DNA of 64,000 bases from Epiperipatus broadwayi. Lineage: Eukaryota; Animalia; Onychophora. Position 1 is the first letter of the stretch, and every line of letters starts with the position of its first letter. The notes under the pieces are model-generated. The model was given only the letters and a program-made list of their open reading frames with translations. It ran no database searches and was not told where the DNA came from. The DNA lies in the NCBI GenBank assembly GCA_028023455.1, contig JAQFVV010000003.1, positions 21,576,001 to 21,640,000 of the forward strand. The letters run 5' to 3'. The translations under genes and the position numbers were made by a program. Of this stretch, positions 21,560-59,135 are shown piece by piece.

Positions 21560-23810
21560 TAGTATTAATATCCATGTTTGAGTTTTATGAAATGATGAAA
21601 AGCAACAGCCACCCAATAAACAGCAAAGTTGCGGGGAGCTCTATCCAATTGCAATGGAGTCCCATGTTTGTGCAGCTGTGAAGGGGTCAGCAGTACGCAT
21701 ATCTCTATCCCTTTCCTTGTTTAGTATTTGGAAAAATGCTGTGAATATATTATTCAAGGTCTCAGCCTGGAACACCAGCTTACAGCGCAATGCCCAGATG
21801 GAAAAGTTAATTATGGCCGAAAGCCGGATCTCAGAGAATATGCCCTTTTCAATTGCTGTCTTGAGGTTCATTTCAATTTGATTTCTTGTCTTGTTTTGTT
21901 GAAAATGAGTTCTTAAATTGTTCAAAGTTATGCATTCAAAGAGGAAGTGATCGGTAGTCTATTCCTGTCTTTGACACAATGTGCAATTAGGGTCAATATC
22001 TTGCCCCCTTTTATAGTGGAGGAAGGCATTTGTTGGGAGGGCATGCAGGTTCAATTTCAATAGGAAGTCCATGATTTTTGGCAGCAACTTCCAGAGCTTG
22101 GTCATCCTTATCATTTGAGGGATGTTGATTGAAAGGCAGCTGGGGATCCTCTGTTTTTGATGGTCAAGAAGATCAAACACTTCCCAATACGCAAGTTTTC
22201 TTTGAAATAGGGTTGATGTTGGTTTGATGTTATCAAAGATAAAGTTGATCTGCTGTTGAAGGAGCAAGGCATGTCCTCTGCGGGGTGGCCGATCAGTAGG
22301 TTGAATGTCCTTTTCCGGAAGTGGGCATTGAGCACGTTCATTTTCCTTGAAGATGTTATAGAGTACATTATGGATGCATTGTAAGTTGAATATAGTTAGC
22401 GAGTGTAGTGAGAGACCATTTAAAGTTTTGGGCTTTTGGAGGATTCTCAAGCTAATTACGGGTGATCGGCCCACCCAACACAGTTTTCTTCAGGCAGTTT
22501 CTACTTTGTTGATGAATACCTTGGTGGGGATGAACCCTGCCAAATAGTATATTATTTTTGGAAGAATGAGAGCATTTAAAAGGGCTACTTTCCCAAATAG
22601 GGAAAGGTATATTTTTGACAAAGATGCGATTGTGGTTTCAATTTTCTCTAATAATGAGACCTGTATCTCTTTACGCATCACCGTGGGTGTTTTTGATAGG
22701 TAAAATCCTAGAAATTTCTGTGGTGCTGCTTCAAATCCACCAGAGATCTTCTGGCCAGTAAGAATTGACCAAATAGCTGATTTTTTTGGGTTGACAAGGA
22801 AACCAGATAATTTGGCATGGTGATCAAGAAGTTGTTTTAGCTTACCCAGTTCATCATGGGATGAAAGAAACACAACTACATCATCCATATAGGAGATGTG
22901 ATTGATGTTCTCATTAAGTAGCGGAACAGCGATACTAGAAAACGTGGCCTCGATGTTCAACAGCATTGGATTGATATAGGCAGCAAAGAGAAGTGCACTC
23001 AGGGGAGAACCTTGGGGGATGGAGATGTAGGGCATAAAACCCGGGGCAATGCGACCATCTAGGGACAAGAACACTTCCCGATTGTAAAGAAGGTTCTCAA
23101 TCATTTGAATGTATACGGGTGGTACATTTAGCTGTTCCAAAACACTGAGAAGAACATCAATTCTCACGGAGTCAAATGCCCCAGCTATATCAAGTTGGAC
23201 TGCAATGGGCCGGGACTTCCTTTGTCTCCGCACATGATCGACCAGAAGTCTGAAGTGGCTGACAGCATCAGATGTTGAAGTGCCTTTTTTTGCAAATTGA
23301 TAGCGCAAAAGTTGTTTAATTATGTTATATTGAATCTTTGTCAATAGAGGAATCATCGAGATAGGACGCAGGTTATTGAGATCTAGTTGTGCATCTCGCT
23401 TCTTTAAAAAGGGTACCATGGAGATGGGACATAGGTTTATTAGGTGATGACTTCCAGTGGCGATGAGGTCTATCATTCCATGGATTACTGGGATAGTAAA
23501 AGCTCTTAGGTGTAAAAGTAGAAATCTGGGAATTCCATGCATGCCAGGATGGACACTTTCTGGGAGTTATTGCAGTTTGTCAAGAATATCACCATCTGTG
23601 ATGTTATGTTCCATAGGGTTGTTAGTAATAAAAACTCTACAGATGTTAGTGACACCAATAGGTTGTAATTTTCTTTTGTAAAAGTCTCTTATTTTGGAAA
23701 GCATGGAGAGGCCGATATATTGTTTACTGTGTATCTTGATCGATGAGGGTGCATTTTCTTTTAGCCCATAATGGCTGTTTCAATGACAATTTCCAGTTCT
23801 CATAACATAC
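21560..23810 (-). mobile_element. L1/Tx1-like non-LTR retrotransposon, 5'-truncated, best-preserved ORF2 copy
   Basis: 350-aa ORF with NLRPISM, QLDIAGAFDSV, PQGSPLSALLF, SYMDD and KFLGF; downstream NLHALPT, CTLC..H..C and IWALRC. Confidence 0.95.
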
Positions 23811-41190: not shown

Positions 41191-41226
41191 TCTCCAAAAT
41201 GACAGAAGAATAATTTAGTGTTATAA

Positions 41227-41415
41227 ATATAGGGGATTTGAACTCAAACTTTCAAGTACCCGTCAACTATCCACACTAATTCATACCACTGATACACATG
41301 ACCACGCACATGTAAAAAAGATAAATAATCACCAATATATGTGTATTTTTTGCTAAACCAGCACTCATCACTTGGTCCAGATTATTGTGTCCCATACATA
41401 TATAATTTAAGTTTG
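41227..41415 (-). mobile_element. Family B PLE-like pLTR fragment with degenerate hammerhead at about 41331-41376
   Basis: Homologous to both arms of 56094-56630. The reverse complement reads ccaa gtgatga gtgc tggttta gcaa aaaa tacacata ta ttgg. Confidence 0.8.
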
Positions 41416-45573: not shown

Positions 45574-47221
45574 TTTTCTATAATTATTTCAGTTAGTGTT
45601 AACAGTAACTTTCTTTTCTCATATATATATATTGAAGTTTACTTTGTTCAAAGCTAAATTGGTTTGTAAATGTAAATCACATAAAAAAGCTAATACTTAT
45701 GAACATCTAAAATCCTTGATCTGCCAGAAGTACCAAAAGTAGACTTGATTCAATGATTTTATACTCCAGTCTTACACTCTATCACTGCACTAAGCCATGC
45801 AGGACAAACAATTTCAAAATTTAAATTAACAGAAATGCTGAAATAATGTCATTTAAATCCAAATATCAAAGTAGAATAAACATTTATTATTTTTGAAAAC
45901 ACATTGAAACAACCAAATGTTAACTGGCGATTAAATAAATTATAATAAAACATTTATTCATATCCAGTCATTACTTACCATCTAATATTATTTACATCCC
46001 ACAAACCTTTACACTCATCAATAACATAATATCCTGCCTATTAATGGACCTTTAAAAATATCCATGCACATCATTCATTCCTTCAATACTTAATATGTCA
46101 CCAACATTTTTCTCAATTATTCCTTATCCAAGAAAGGTCTTCATAATCTAACATTATAAATATCCCTAATTCTTTTATCATCCACTAAAATATGTTAACT
46201 TCCTGTTATCCAATGTATGTATAGGGACAATCATATAACTTTTGAAACTTCTTGTACTTATTCAGTTTGACTGACAGATACTTTTCTCAGTAATTGTATT
46301 ATTGACATCGAACACTTAGGGAAAGCTGATAATAGAAGTGTCTACTAAAATGCAATTGAATAAGTGCAAACTTGTGGATTTTTTTAGTAATGATTGATAT
46401 AATTTCACACTTGCTTGATTTGCTTAATCCATCCTTAATTTTGTGAATGTGTGTGTGTGTGTGTGTTGAACAATAGATACAACTCCTTAATTGTGCATTT
46501 ATAGTGAGATAAATTGGAAATTCTTAAATAGATGCTTTGATCAGAAATGATGAATTTGAGTTTCCTATCATAAGTAAATGTTGATTCTTCAGGATGTGAA
46601 TAGTATTTCTACTATGACCTGCCATACTAAGTATGAAATTATAAACTTTAAGAAAAACTCATATCTACAATAAATATTTTACTTTATAGAATGGAAGCAG
46701 TAACTAATAATATATCCAATACTTTATTTGGTTTCCAAGAAATTATTAAATTCAATGAATCATATATAACTTGTTTAATAGTTTATTTTGAACATATTTT
46801 ACTCTTGCTTAATATGAACATTACATATTATAGCAGGTATACATTCAATCAATAAAACTAACTTCATAACATCTATTCTATTTTTCTAGGCCTATAATAA
46901 CCAAATAAATAATGAAGTATACTTACTTTATTTCTTAAATTCATTGGTTTTACTGTCTTCCTTTTCATCTGATTGATATTTTAAAAATATGGTTGTTTAT
47001 TTTATATTGATACTTTACTTTCACAACATGATCACGTTTCTAAACTTAATCATGTGTTTTATTTTCTAAAACATTAATTATTTTTTTCAATTTCTATTTC
47101 TTATTTCTGCAATTTAAATAAACATTACAAATCTGTTTTTACTGTTTTATTCATGGTCAGTCAAATGGTCACAATTATATAATGAGCATGATAACAGCTC
47201 TTAACAAGCTTTTCAGAATAT

Positions 47222-47260
47222 CCTCAGACCAGTTTCTAGCTCTGGCTTTCATCAGTGAGA
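47222..47260 (-). ncRNA. Minimal type I hammerhead ribozyme candidate (family A) in the loop of a 30-bp inverted repeat spanning 47175-47294
   Basis: The reverse complement reads UCUCA CUGAUGA AAGCCAGAGCUA GAAA CUGGUC UGAGG. Confidence 0.7.
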
Positions 47261-47399
47261 CTTATTAAGAGCTATTGGCATGCTCATTATATAACATTTG
47301 TAATACAAGCTTATTAAATTAAGTCACATGATATATGACTTGATTTCCTTGCAATGGGTACAGAGTAGACATTCTCAACACTTAAATATTGTTGCACAA

Positions 47400-48599: not shown

Positions 48600-48895
48600 T
48601 TTGTAGTTAAGTAGAGATAAAAGGTGGCTGCTGGAGAGTTACATTAGATACTAAGATCTAAGTGCAGTGCTCTCAGATTCAAGGCTCCTCACTGATGAAA
48701 GCCACAAGTCCGAAACTAGTCTGAGGATATTGGATGAATAGGCACTAGATGGGGATTTTATGTACTGGCTTTCTGGTATCCATTAATTACTCTAACTTGC
48801 ACTGAATGGCAATACTGTATGGAGAGTTTTGCCTGTTTTAATAACAGTTATAAGCAAGCATAAGAAATGGTGATCATGTGATGTTTATTGGCTTA
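48600..48895 (+). mobile_element. Family A PLE/retrozyme-like repeat, most complete copy
   Basis: Homologous to 7800-8010 (reverse complement), 28584, 48340 and 53263. Confidence 0.85.
48686..48727 (+). ncRNA. Minimal type I hammerhead ribozyme candidate (family A)
   Basis: UCCUCA CUGAUGA AAGCCACAAGUCC GAAA CUAGUC UGAGGA: 6-bp stem I, intact core, palindromic ACUAGU stem III and GUC cleavage triplet; stem II is imperfect. Confidence 0.78.
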
Positions 48896-55848: not shown

Positions 55849-56093
55849 AAATAGAGCATTGTGTTGCTAAGTTAAGAGATAATATCAGATAATAATAAAA
55901 AAGATATTAGAGATTGTACCGGTATTTATTTTTACACAATATATATATACACTATATATATATACCCAAAGACTATTATGAGAATTGAAATTTTCTATAA
56001 ATGTCGAAGTTGTAGGAAAGTCTGGAAAAGAAGAATAGGCCTAATTTATATTGAGAGATTTGTAAACGTATATTTAAAATTTATCCAAATGAT

Positions 56094-56630
56094 GATTTGA
56101 ACTCAGACTTTCACATGACCTCAACCATCCATGCTATCTCATATTGCTGATACACTTGATCACACACATGTTGAAAAGATGAATAATCACCAATATACAT
56201 ATTTCATGCTAAACCAGCAATCATCAATTCGTCCAGATTATCATCTCCATACATATATACAATCAAAGCTCAGCTTATGTTAAGATAGCCAATCTTCATA
56301 CTTTAATGGACATGCTTCAAACTACTCCACCTCATAACTCTTCAGCCATCCATTTCATTGAAAATCTGATGATGGAGTTGTGAGGTGGAGTACTTTGAAG
56401 CCTGACCATTAGAGTATGAAGATTGGCTATCTTAATATAAGCTGAGCTTTGATTGTATATATGTATGGAGATAATAATCTGGATGAACTGATGAGTGGTG
56501 GTTTAGCATGAAATATGTATATTGGTGATTATTTATCTTTTCAACATGTGTGTGATCAAATGTATAAGCAGTATGAAATAGCATGAATGGCTGATGGTCA
56601 TGTGAAAGTCTGAGTTCAAATCCCCTATAT
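56094..56630. mobile_element. Family B fold-back element (arms of about 260 bp), PLE-like inverted pLTRs
   Basis: The arms are reverse complements around about 56355; homologous to 41227-41415. Confidence 0.88.
56484..56525 (+). ncRNA. Minimal type I hammerhead ribozyme candidate (family B); mirror copy at 56190-56230 (-)
   Basis: CUGAUGA GUGG UGGUUUA GCAU GAAA UAUGUA UA UUGG; three-copy consensus CCAA CUGAUGA GUGC..GCAC GAAA UACGUA UA UUGG. Confidence 0.72.
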
Positions 56631-59135
56631 ATTACACATAGAAATGCAGGCATGAAAAAGCCTGTACTGTAGAAAAAATTAATATTCCAAATGATGATTG
56701 TAATATTATTTGAAATATTTTCAGCAGGTTATTTATAAGATGGTTTGATACAAAAGTAATCATACACTGTTTATACATTCAATGTAAATACAGAAATTTT
56801 TAGAAAATTAGCATTATTAGAATAATAATGTTCTGTGTACAATTACATCAATATTGTGTTAAACAATTAATTACATTTGTTGAGAATATCCATTTTTGAT
56901 TTTATATGCCCTCATGGTATTGTTTCCTAGGTGAACAGATTATTTATTAGATGCGTACCTGACATTTGATTTATTCAACATTTGTCAAAACCATATAAAC
57001 ATTTTTTTTAGGGTTTGCTTGACTTATCATCACAATATCTTCAACTTTTACTTTTAATAGTTTTAATGTATGTTATATAATTTGATCCTTTAATCAGGAA
57101 TTCATGTAAGGATATTGTTTTCACATGTTAATGCATGCTACTTGCAGAGTGAAGAATATAAAGACTGTCATTCATTCATCCCAGTACTAAAGTGAAACAA
57201 TCTTTAAATATACCACTGCAAAATAAATTTCTTTCCAACAACCTCACATAATAAAAAAAGGTAAAGAAAGAATTGTCCGATAGTAAGGTTATATTTTTTA
57301 TTCTTGTTTTACTTTTTATTAAACATACTTAAATATTTATTTAATGTTCATTATTAGATTGTTAGCAGGATTGTCTATGGTACTGTTACCAGAAAATAAT
57401 CCCTATTCCTGATGATAACCTAAAATGCTTTTCAAATTTTGCCTGAATTCAAAATTAGATTAGATACATCACTACTGTACCATAAAATATTCAATTTAGG
57501 ACCCTATTATTAATAGAAAAAATTGTTTTTTTATTCATTTCTGAAGTTTTAAATCAATTTAACATAAATTCTTAATATCTACTTTTACTTTTCTATCATT
57601 GCTGCTTTTATTTTTGTACAATTGTTCAGCAAGATATGTAAATATGGTAATTTTCTTAGCTCTGACTTAAAATCAAGAATGTGCCATGGTTATGCTTTTA
57701 ATAAACCACTTTGGGTTTCTTTTTAAGATGCCTAATAGTTTTTGAAACATCAGTGTGTGTATGTATATATTTAATAAAATTGGCTAATGAAACTACACAA
57801 GCATGTAAATTAATAAAAATATATTTCATCACATGTATTAATACATAGAAAAAAATTACTATTTCATCATTATATCAAAATTTGTCTCGAAAGAAAATTT
57901 TGTCATGTGATTCTAGGAATAAGCATCATTACCTTCCCTCATACATTCACATGGTGACTTTTAATATATAAATTAAAACTGCATAATAGTATTGAAAAAA
58001 AGAAAGGGAGAAATAAGCTAAAATTCTTGAAAAACTTACATTTACATATACACACTGGGTCTCATTTTATGCAGTAGATAGGTTCCTCAGAAAACACGCA
58101 CAAAAGAAATTGCACAAAAATAGACTTAACTTACCTTGAAAAATGGGGGATACGTACTGTTATTTTCCAAAAATCACATAAAAGCAAAACAACAACATAA
58201 AATTACTTTAAAATTTGCATAAAAAAAAATAAAATAAAATATGATTAATAAAAAATTTCAAATTTGAAAAAAATTGATACAAGACAAACTTTTTTTACTT
58301 TTTTTATTAACTACAGTATTTAATTTTATTCAAAACAATATATTTTTATGCGTAATTTACATTTTTTTTATACATGTATGGTATTTTAATCATTAGCGCT
58401 ATTTAAGACATCAGATTCATCATGATGTGATGTGATGTGAGGTACTGTAGTTTCTCCTTAAATGAAGTCAAGAGGAAATACAACTAAAACATTTTCCAAT
58501 CACTGTTGATCCTTCCCATTTCACTAAGTGATCTAAAATTGAAATTTTTGTTTCCAAAGAAATTCATTTTCTTGGATGTTTTTTTCTCTCCATTAGAGTA
58601 AACTAAAAGTTTAAAATAAAAATAAGAACTTAGACTTACGATAATAAAAAGACACCAACTTACCAATGTAGGGCAAAATTTAATTAAAACAAACAATTAA
58701 AAATTAAATTCTTATTTTTGACTTTAATTTTTTAATTTTCAATTCCGTTTAAAAATCAAATTTCATCATTTCACATCACCTTAATTTCAGATCACGTTAT
58801 GTAATTTTTAAATTGTTAATTATAATTAAAAATCAGATTTTAATTGTCAAGTTTAATTGTGCCCTCTGCTGTTACTCACTTTTTAAAAATAAACTTGCGG
58901 ACACTAAATGATTAATTGATTACATACTCTTTTTATAAAAAGCAAAAATAGAACGTGATTTAAAATGCAAAAACAACATACATAGTATTTTTCATCTATA
59001 ACATTTGAACAGATTTACATTATAGTCTTGTAAAATGGGGAAATTCTGATTTTAAGTGAATTATGAACTTCTTTATTGCATAAAATCTATTACAGTACTA
59101 TTATAAAGCACTGAAAGTATTGAAATTATTAAACG

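Follow-up and report, generated by a model that had tools for sequence, protein, structure and literature searches.

Positions 56095–56685 of the window, a 64,000-nt stretch of the Epiperipatus broadwayi genome, very probably represent one old insertion of a non-autonomous, non-coding retrozyme of ~475 nt, inserted head to head in the manner of Penelope-like elements (PLEs). The fold-back that fills most of this interval is an insertion scar, formed anew at each event; it clearly exemplifies a known kind and is not a new device. The original prediction had placed two arms with oppositely oriented hammerhead-like motifs at 56094–56630, and both the complementarity of the arms and the positions of the motifs bear this out. 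That interval covers the fold-back but falls short of the full insertion, which reaches 56685 and is bracketed by 14-bp target-site duplications. The insertion has the following parts, with unit coordinates counted from C3 of the hammerhead as position 1.

56084–56097, no strand: left target-site duplication TCCAAATGATGATT (exact 14-nt repeat)
56095–56374, minus strand: left arm, an antisense retrozyme unit from about unit 324 to 134 (blastn of the 475-nt consensus, inverted repeat and junction comparison)
56178–56247, minus strand: left-arm hammerhead remnant (sequence and comparison with the family ancestor)
56375–56622, plus strand: right arm, a sense unit from about unit 360 (blastn, inverted repeat and junction comparison)
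56468–56537, plus strand: right-arm hammerhead remnant (sequence, comparison with the ancestor and a fold showing distal helix I)
56623–56685, plus strand: 3′ tail with a conserved hairpin, at the right end only (outer-end comparison across copies and hairpin covariation)
56686–56699, no strand: right target-site duplication TCCAAATGATGATT (exact 14-nt repeat)

An inverted-repeat comparison gave two main arms of 220 nt each, 56121–56340 and 56375–56594, that are 92% complementary, and outermost arms of 27 nt, 56094–56120 and 56596–56622, with 100% complementarity. The apparent hairpin loop, 56341–56374, consists of the inner 34–36 nt of the left arm; the 5′ truncation of the right arm lies 36 nt deeper than that of the left. 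At its outer end, the left arm terminates at a short reverse-transcription start site and carries no tail. The right arm continues into the tail, which contains a hairpin stem (GCAGG/CCUGU, 56646–56667) and stops at a long reverse-transcription start site. The TCCAAATGATGATT repeat occurs nowhere but at 56084–56097 and 56686–56699 and is the longest flank repeat for the window copy in our survey of target-site duplications; the final 3–4 nt of the left duplication coincide with the first bases of the element, a microhomology. The window as a whole has a GC content of 26.6% and a CpG observed/expected ratio of 0.24, a composition unlike that of human DNA.

The element belongs to a very large family. 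Searching the 5.6-Gb assembly with the 537-nt fold-back returned 10,598 first-look candidates, and the 40 of these that we scored were all near full length with 78–90% identity. A 25-mer taken from the sequence immediately 3′ of the cleavage site matched 130,445 places at ≤2 mismatches, compared with 0 for the reversed control, giving at least 130,000 units genome-wide by this count; multiplied by the unit length, it puts the family on the order of 1% of the genome. The unit is ~475 nt and occurs in tandem arrays with a period of 473–475 nt. Some arrays contain units that are 100% identical, indicating very recent activity of the family, and some are double, with the two halves pointing apart (<-<- ->->). 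No stop-free run longer than 71 codons was present in a trimer of the unit.

Two further loci illustrate the range of forms. A solo, 5′-truncated copy of the same family lies within the window at 41226–41404 on the minus strand; it ends at the short start site, has no tail, shows a possible short duplication (TTTATAA..CAC) and carries a decayed hammerhead (GTGATGA, GCAAAAAATACACA). Elsewhere in the genome, L080:375-2657 is a double array in which 2.9 minus-strand units stand head to head with 2.5 plus-strand units. Apart from a 15-nt duplication in one unit, its units are 99.5–100% identical to the consensus, and it is flanked by a duplication of ~8–10 bp (TAATGAAT).

Comparing copies revealed how the fold-back arises. 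The inner junction between the arms is different in each of ~40 copies, the longer arm can be the left or the right, and the inner ends span unit 31 to 424; those of the window copy lie at about unit 324 (left) and 360 (right). The outer ends, in contrast, fall into two classes, at about unit 134–155 and 190–210. The stretch between the two classes is the tail, which is usually present on one side only: one end extends through roughly 45–60 nt that include the hairpin, and the opposite end stops after GTTCAAATC or ~13 nt beyond it. Target-site duplications across copies measure 8–16 bp, and duplications of at least 10 nt were found at 23 of 36 copies versus 42 of 300 mismatched-locus controls (Fisher p = 4e-10). 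Orientation is equally skewed: among the first 100 25-mer matches listed, neighbours within 1.2 kb formed 19 (-,+) pairs, no (+,-) pairs and 9 tandem pairs (binomial p = 4e-6). Given its variable junction, its unequal outer ends and the frequency of solo and tandem forms, the fold-back is a recurrent scar of insertion.

These observations also bear on the reading of the fold-back as a designed, functional hairpin unit, which the comparison does not support. Under this reading, the fold-back itself would be functional or mobile, either as a MITE or Foldback-type DNA transposon or as a small-RNA hairpin locus that carries hammerheads by design. An RNA of the fold-back does form a single, highly stable hairpin (-382 kcal/mol, z = -48 versus shuffles), for many copies the matches to the query cover almost its whole length on both strands, and generic miRNA-precursor models match the center of the hairpin below threshold. 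Like MITEs and Foldback elements, moreover, the insertion consists of a long inverted repeat with a short duplication on either side. However, the junctions vary from copy to copy, the ends are asymmetric with a one-sided tail, the length of the duplication is not fixed, and solo 5′-truncated copies such as 41226–41404 occur alongside tandem arrays. The Rfam miRNA matches score 19–69 bits against gathering scores of 52–195, a generic response that any long hairpin would elicit, and we rejected a miRNA precursor as an identity for the element. In addition, the arms of the window copy decay freely, having diverged by 7.7%. The variable junctions already largely refute a functional fold-back, and we consider it highly improbable. 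Since junctions, ends and duplications vary and solo and tandem forms exist, the features of the family point to reverse transcription rather than to cut-and-paste transposition. For annotation, this means that fold-backs in this genome with a ribozyme on each arm are best recorded as insertion scars, not as hairpin-RNA genes.

The tail provides a further landmark. In 37 tails drawn from several subfamilies, the 7-bp stem GUGCAGG/CCUGUAC persists while the loops vary; 88.8% of the alignment cells are paired, and none of 500 shuffles reached the observed covariation score. Three pairs show double-sided changes (G-C to A-U, U-A to C-G and G.U to A-U). The covariation amounts to modest evidence for the hairpin, as one or two splits between subfamilies account for the double changes. 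Its position makes the hairpin a candidate for the element that the reverse transcriptase recognizes or starts from. Directly before the short start site, the arm ends in GAGTTCGAATCC, a near-perfect match to the pol III B-box or tRNA T-loop motif that is also present in subfamily consensuses; in the window (56611–56622) it has decayed to GAGTTCAAATCC. We considered a tRNA-derived SINE in view of the B-box/T-arm-like arm end GAGTTCGAATCCC, but rejected it: ARAGORN found 0 tRNAs inside 39 copies, and the sole Rfam tRNA match obtained with the copies, L003:2243-2314, lies outside the element.

The arrangement of arms, tail and duplications corresponds closely to what is known of PLEs. PLE insertions are highly 5′-truncated, often form partial tandems, often carry an adjacent inverted and 5′-truncated copy, and have a tail of 30–40 bp at one end only (Craig et al., PMC8557442). 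In experiments with purified PLE protein, both target strands were cut and extended, and reverse transcription began at two adjacent internal sites, with the tail being the sequence between them (Frangieh et al., PMC11167929). The family displays the same set of features: 5′ truncation, adjacent inverted 5′-truncated copies, partial tandems and a one-sided tail between two start sites. PLEs are also abundant in this genome, which contains 10,242 GIY-YIG candidates. All 150 of those that we scored exceeded the Pfam cut-off, and the elements have open frames of up to 901 aa, many of them in head-to-head pairs.

We infer that a PLE protein primed synthesis from both strands and that the element passes through a circular RNA, and propose the following course for the insertion. 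PLE enzymes (a reverse transcriptase with a GIY-YIG endonuclease) would cut both target strands 10–14 bp apart, and each 3′-OH would prime reverse transcription of the element RNA. The cDNA begun at the long start site would give the right arm with its tail, and the cDNA begun at the short start site would give the left arm without one. Both would extend towards the 5′ region of the RNA, halting at about unit 360 and 324, and their joining head to head would produce the fold-back and the 14-bp target duplication. The apparent loop would then be the additional 36 nt of the longer arm, and the hammerhead would serve the RNA biology of the element, not the fold-back.

Retrozymes have been proposed to depend on PLEs (PMC7229834; bioRxiv 10.64898/2026.07.22.740005), and those of animals to be non-autonomous PLE derivatives (bioRxiv 10.64898/2026.07.22.740005); PLEs are reported to be absent from mammals (PMC8557442; bioRxiv 10.64898/2026.07.22.740005). 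The insertions of the family described here display, in a single genome, features demonstrated biochemically for a PLE: a pair of start points, a tail on one side and joining head to head. They lend support to the published proposal, still indirect, that the retrozymes of animals travel as passengers of PLEs.

We then consider the motif that each arm carries. On the plus strand, the right-arm motif runs from CTGATGA (56488–56494) to GAAATATGTATA|TTGG, spanning 56488–56525, with its 3′ half, GAAA TATGTA T A | TTGG, at 56510–56525. The left-arm motif is the reverse complement at 56190–56227, with TTGATGA replacing CTGATGA. A consensus of 83 aligned arms, drawn from ~40 near-full-length relatives in the same genome, reads ACCAA CTGATGA GTGC TGGTTTA GCA(C/T) GAAA TACGTA T A TTGGT. 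In this consensus, helix I comprises CCAA/UUGG plus an A-U pair (ACCAA/UUGGU), followed by a 3-nt bulge and a long distal stem; helix II is the 4-bp GUGC/GCAC; helix III consists of two pairs, A-U and U-A, around a palindromic ACGU (palindrome AUACGUAU); and the predicted cleavage triplet is AUA, with A at H17. The original prediction had reconstructed from the window copy alone a 4-bp stem II, a palindromic stem III, an AUA triplet and a CCAA/UUGG stem I, which is the family consensus.

The ancestral CpGs assumed in that reconstruction are likewise present in other copies. Both TG and CA forms occur among copies at GCACGAAA, implying an ancestral CpG there, and a CpG-aware ancestor of the 25 nearest arms contained GCACGAAA, TACGTA and CTGACGA. 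The 34-nt motif with TACGTA intact had 17,910 exact matches in the genome, compared with 0 for the reversed control; 1,621 of these have G10.1, and among the first 100 G10.1 matches listed, 26 have GCACGAAA (C11.1). The conserved core, C3 U4 G5 A6 N7 G8 A9 ... G12 A13 A14 A15.1 ... U16.1 H17, is complete in the consensus and in all 17,910 exact copies, and the helices follow the type I order, with helix I open and helices II and III closed. Metazoan type I hammerheads have a helix III made of a short stem and a small palindromic loop and act as dimers (PMC4209133), a description that the family motif fits. Judged by its sequence, the motif is a hammerhead of the canonical metazoan type, and we infer that it has, or had, ribozyme activity. 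As helix III offers only 2 bp and a palindromic ACGU loop, cleavage would be expected in dimers within multimeric transcripts.

An alternative is that the likeness to a hammerhead is fortuitous or no longer reflects a ribozyme, and that the element is a PLE-dependent short retroelement in which CUGAUGA...GAAA has no catalytic role. Several results are in line with it. Rfam hammerhead models (RF00163 and relatives) gave no match at the gathering score in the window or 20 copies. Relaxing the cut-off to E≤10 still gave none in the window copy, in a young and intact copy or in one with G10.1; other hammerhead families of the same genome do reach the RF00163 threshold. In the dominant variant, positions 10.1 and 11.1 form a U.U mismatch. 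Across subfamily consensuses, 5 of 44 sites in the hammerhead and 50 of 212 elsewhere in the arm were variable, a difference short of significance (p = 0.10) that we regard as uninformative. Finally, PLE insertion in vitro does not require hammerhead cleavage (PMC11167929).

Against this stand the complete core with A at H17 and the three helices in type I order, including a helix I of 5 bp, a bulge and a distal stem. A 200-Mb simulation with the dinucleotide make-up of the window produced 0 motifs equal to either family variant, which makes a chance origin very unlikely; only one palindrome-type motif in the same simulation satisfied even a permissive descriptor, and a looser descriptor that also permitted a hairpin helix III had 7 matches in 19 Mb. 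Subfamily masters differ within the motif only at the free position N7 and at 10.1 and 11.1, with no compensatory change. The element also has the tandem layout of a retrozyme, in which hammerheads are expected, other hammerhead families that pass RF00163 occur in the genome, and the CpG losses within the motif, described below, preserved pairing. We regard this alternative as improbable and retain the reading of the motif as a hammerhead.

Two other measures have little bearing on the choice. Minimum free energy folds of 85-nt hammerhead segments did not outperform those of shuffles (z = -0.3 to -0.7), which is what a small, AU-rich motif of the dimer type would be expected to show, and helix covariation across copies is uninformative on constraint because copies are dead on arrival. 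The combination of CUGAUGA and CUGA also yields weak SNORD matches, at 15.9 bits against a gathering score of 36, and we rejected a C/D-box snoRNA.

The family is dominated by an unusual version of the motif. U10.1/U11.1 is found in ~16,300 of the 17,910 exact motifs and is both the commonest and the youngest variant, and its lineage includes arrays whose units are 100% identical; the canonical G10.1-C11.1 form marks an older and more decayed lineage, and the source of the window copy had G.U. To our knowledge, the G10.1-C11.1 pair is highly conserved and almost always present in hammerheads. It is conceivable, if on balance somewhat doubtful, that the U10.1/U11.1 lineage is either a natural, still active core-adjacent variant or a sign that Penelope-driven amplification needs no efficient self-cleavage. 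The latter, if true, would question the central place of the ribozyme in the mobility of retrozymes, and the dispensability of self-cleavage for spread would agree with the in vitro PLE result. A youngest lineage with a mismatch at a normally conserved pair thus offers a natural test of whether spread needs the hammerhead.

The window copy retains a record of its own decay. Over 247 positions, the two arms show 19 differences (7.7%), of which just one is a CpG transition. At all 7 of 7 inferred ancestral CpG sites, both arms have the same decayed state, indicating that the CpG losses predate the insertion and arose in the source lineage. Departures from the ideal fold had been attributed largely to CpG transitions; about 7 of 12 are of that type, and the remainder are other changes, namely C3 to U and G10.1 to U in the left arm, C10.4 to G in the right arm and a common C to G in helix I. 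At the time of insertion, the source copy already had G10.1.U11.1 rather than G-C, a helix III of UAUGUA that still allows G.U pairing in a dimer, and the C to G change in helix I. Changes that followed the insertion were C10.4 to G and, in helix I, CG to TG in the right arm, and C3 to U and G10.1 to U in the left arm. Among the CpG losses in the source, all 3 inside the motif were C to U, with G.U pairing kept, and all 4 outside it were G to A; with n = 3, the C-to-U bias within the motif is suggestive only.

Both motifs are damaged as a result of these changes. The left-arm remnant combines C3 to U, G10.1 to U and C11.1 to U with a UAUGUA helix III and CGAA in helix I, and is presumed inactive. 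In the right arm, the core CUGAUGA...GAAA is intact, and cleavage is predicted between 56521 and 56522. Its helix II is weakened by a G.U closing pair and C10.4 to G, the proximal CCAA of helix I is now UGAA, and helix III is UAUGUA. A transcript from either strand had been expected to carry one sense ribozyme and to form a long hairpin. The geometry and the fold support one sense motif and the hairpin, but not a working ribozyme, as both motifs are damaged; according to the fold, both would be buried in a ~250-bp duplex in a read-through RNA and could not fold as ribozymes. With 7.7% divergence between its arms, damage to both motifs and several defects inherited from an already decayed source, the window copy is a dead insertion. 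The locus is an ordinary dead repeat copy, and the family behind it is more useful.

Relative to known systems, the family is closest to animal non-LTR retrozymes (Cervera and de la Pena 2020, PMC7229834). Like them, it has a short, AT-rich, non-coding unit in tandem arrays, one type I hammerhead per unit with a weak palindromic helix III that implies dimeric cleavage, target duplications longer than 4 bp and a very high copy number. It differs from them in three respects: at 475 nt, its unit lies at or beyond the top of the 170–400 nt range reported for such RNAs, its dominant variant has U10.1/U11.1, and most of its copies are 5′-truncated single or head-to-head insertions rather than arrays. 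With PLEs and their pLTR hammerheads (PMC8557442, PMC4209133, PMC11167929), it shares 5′ truncation, partial tandems, an adjacent inverted truncated copy, a one-end tail, two start points, variable duplications and an associated hammerhead motif. Unlike a PLE, however, the family element has no open reading frame, making it a passenger; its tail is ~45–60 nt with a conserved 7-bp hairpin, compared with the published 30–40 bp; and its motif is of the canonical type with a 4-bp helix II, in contrast to the minimal PLE hammerhead, which has an extra base after A9.

Newt satellite 2 and Schistosoma Sm-alpha are likewise repeated elements with a type I hammerhead whose short helix III favors action as a dimer, but their sequences are unrelated to the family. 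Sm-alpha is described as SINE-like with pol III boxes. The family has the B-box-like GAGTTCGAATCC, but its copies yielded no tRNA-like structure.

Other repeats in the window and the genome are worth recording. A different hammerhead repeat, family A, is present in the window at 47100–47300 on the minus strand and 48600–48895 on the plus strand, with motifs at 47255 (-) and 48692 (+). Its motif reads CCUCA CUGAUGA ... GAAAC UAGU C UGAGG, in which ACUAGU/ACUGGU is palindromic and the site is GUC. The two copies point apart with ~1.4 kb between them, and the one at 47255 matches the descriptor. At L010:2033-2160, the tail of the family studied here (family B) breaks inside its hairpin (..GTACAGGC) and runs straight into an inverted family A copy, which could reflect a chimeric or nested insertion, or else a switch of template from one retrozyme RNA to another. 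The genome also contains a separate and very abundant family of minimal hammerheads (CUGAAGAG ACC CAUA GGU CGAAAC CGGU C, with a palindromic ACCGGU; for example G000:C809:203831-203874 and L049-L057). Its copies pass or nearly pass Rfam RF00163, and some of them stand in short tandems, 52–95 nt apart. Finally, adjoining open frames of 350 aa and 171 aa at 21959–23542 on the minus strand of the window match RVT_1 (E = 1e-28) and, weakly, zf-RVT. By these matches the region looks like the remnant of a LINE-type reverse transcriptase, and it coincides with a local rise in GC content to 34%.
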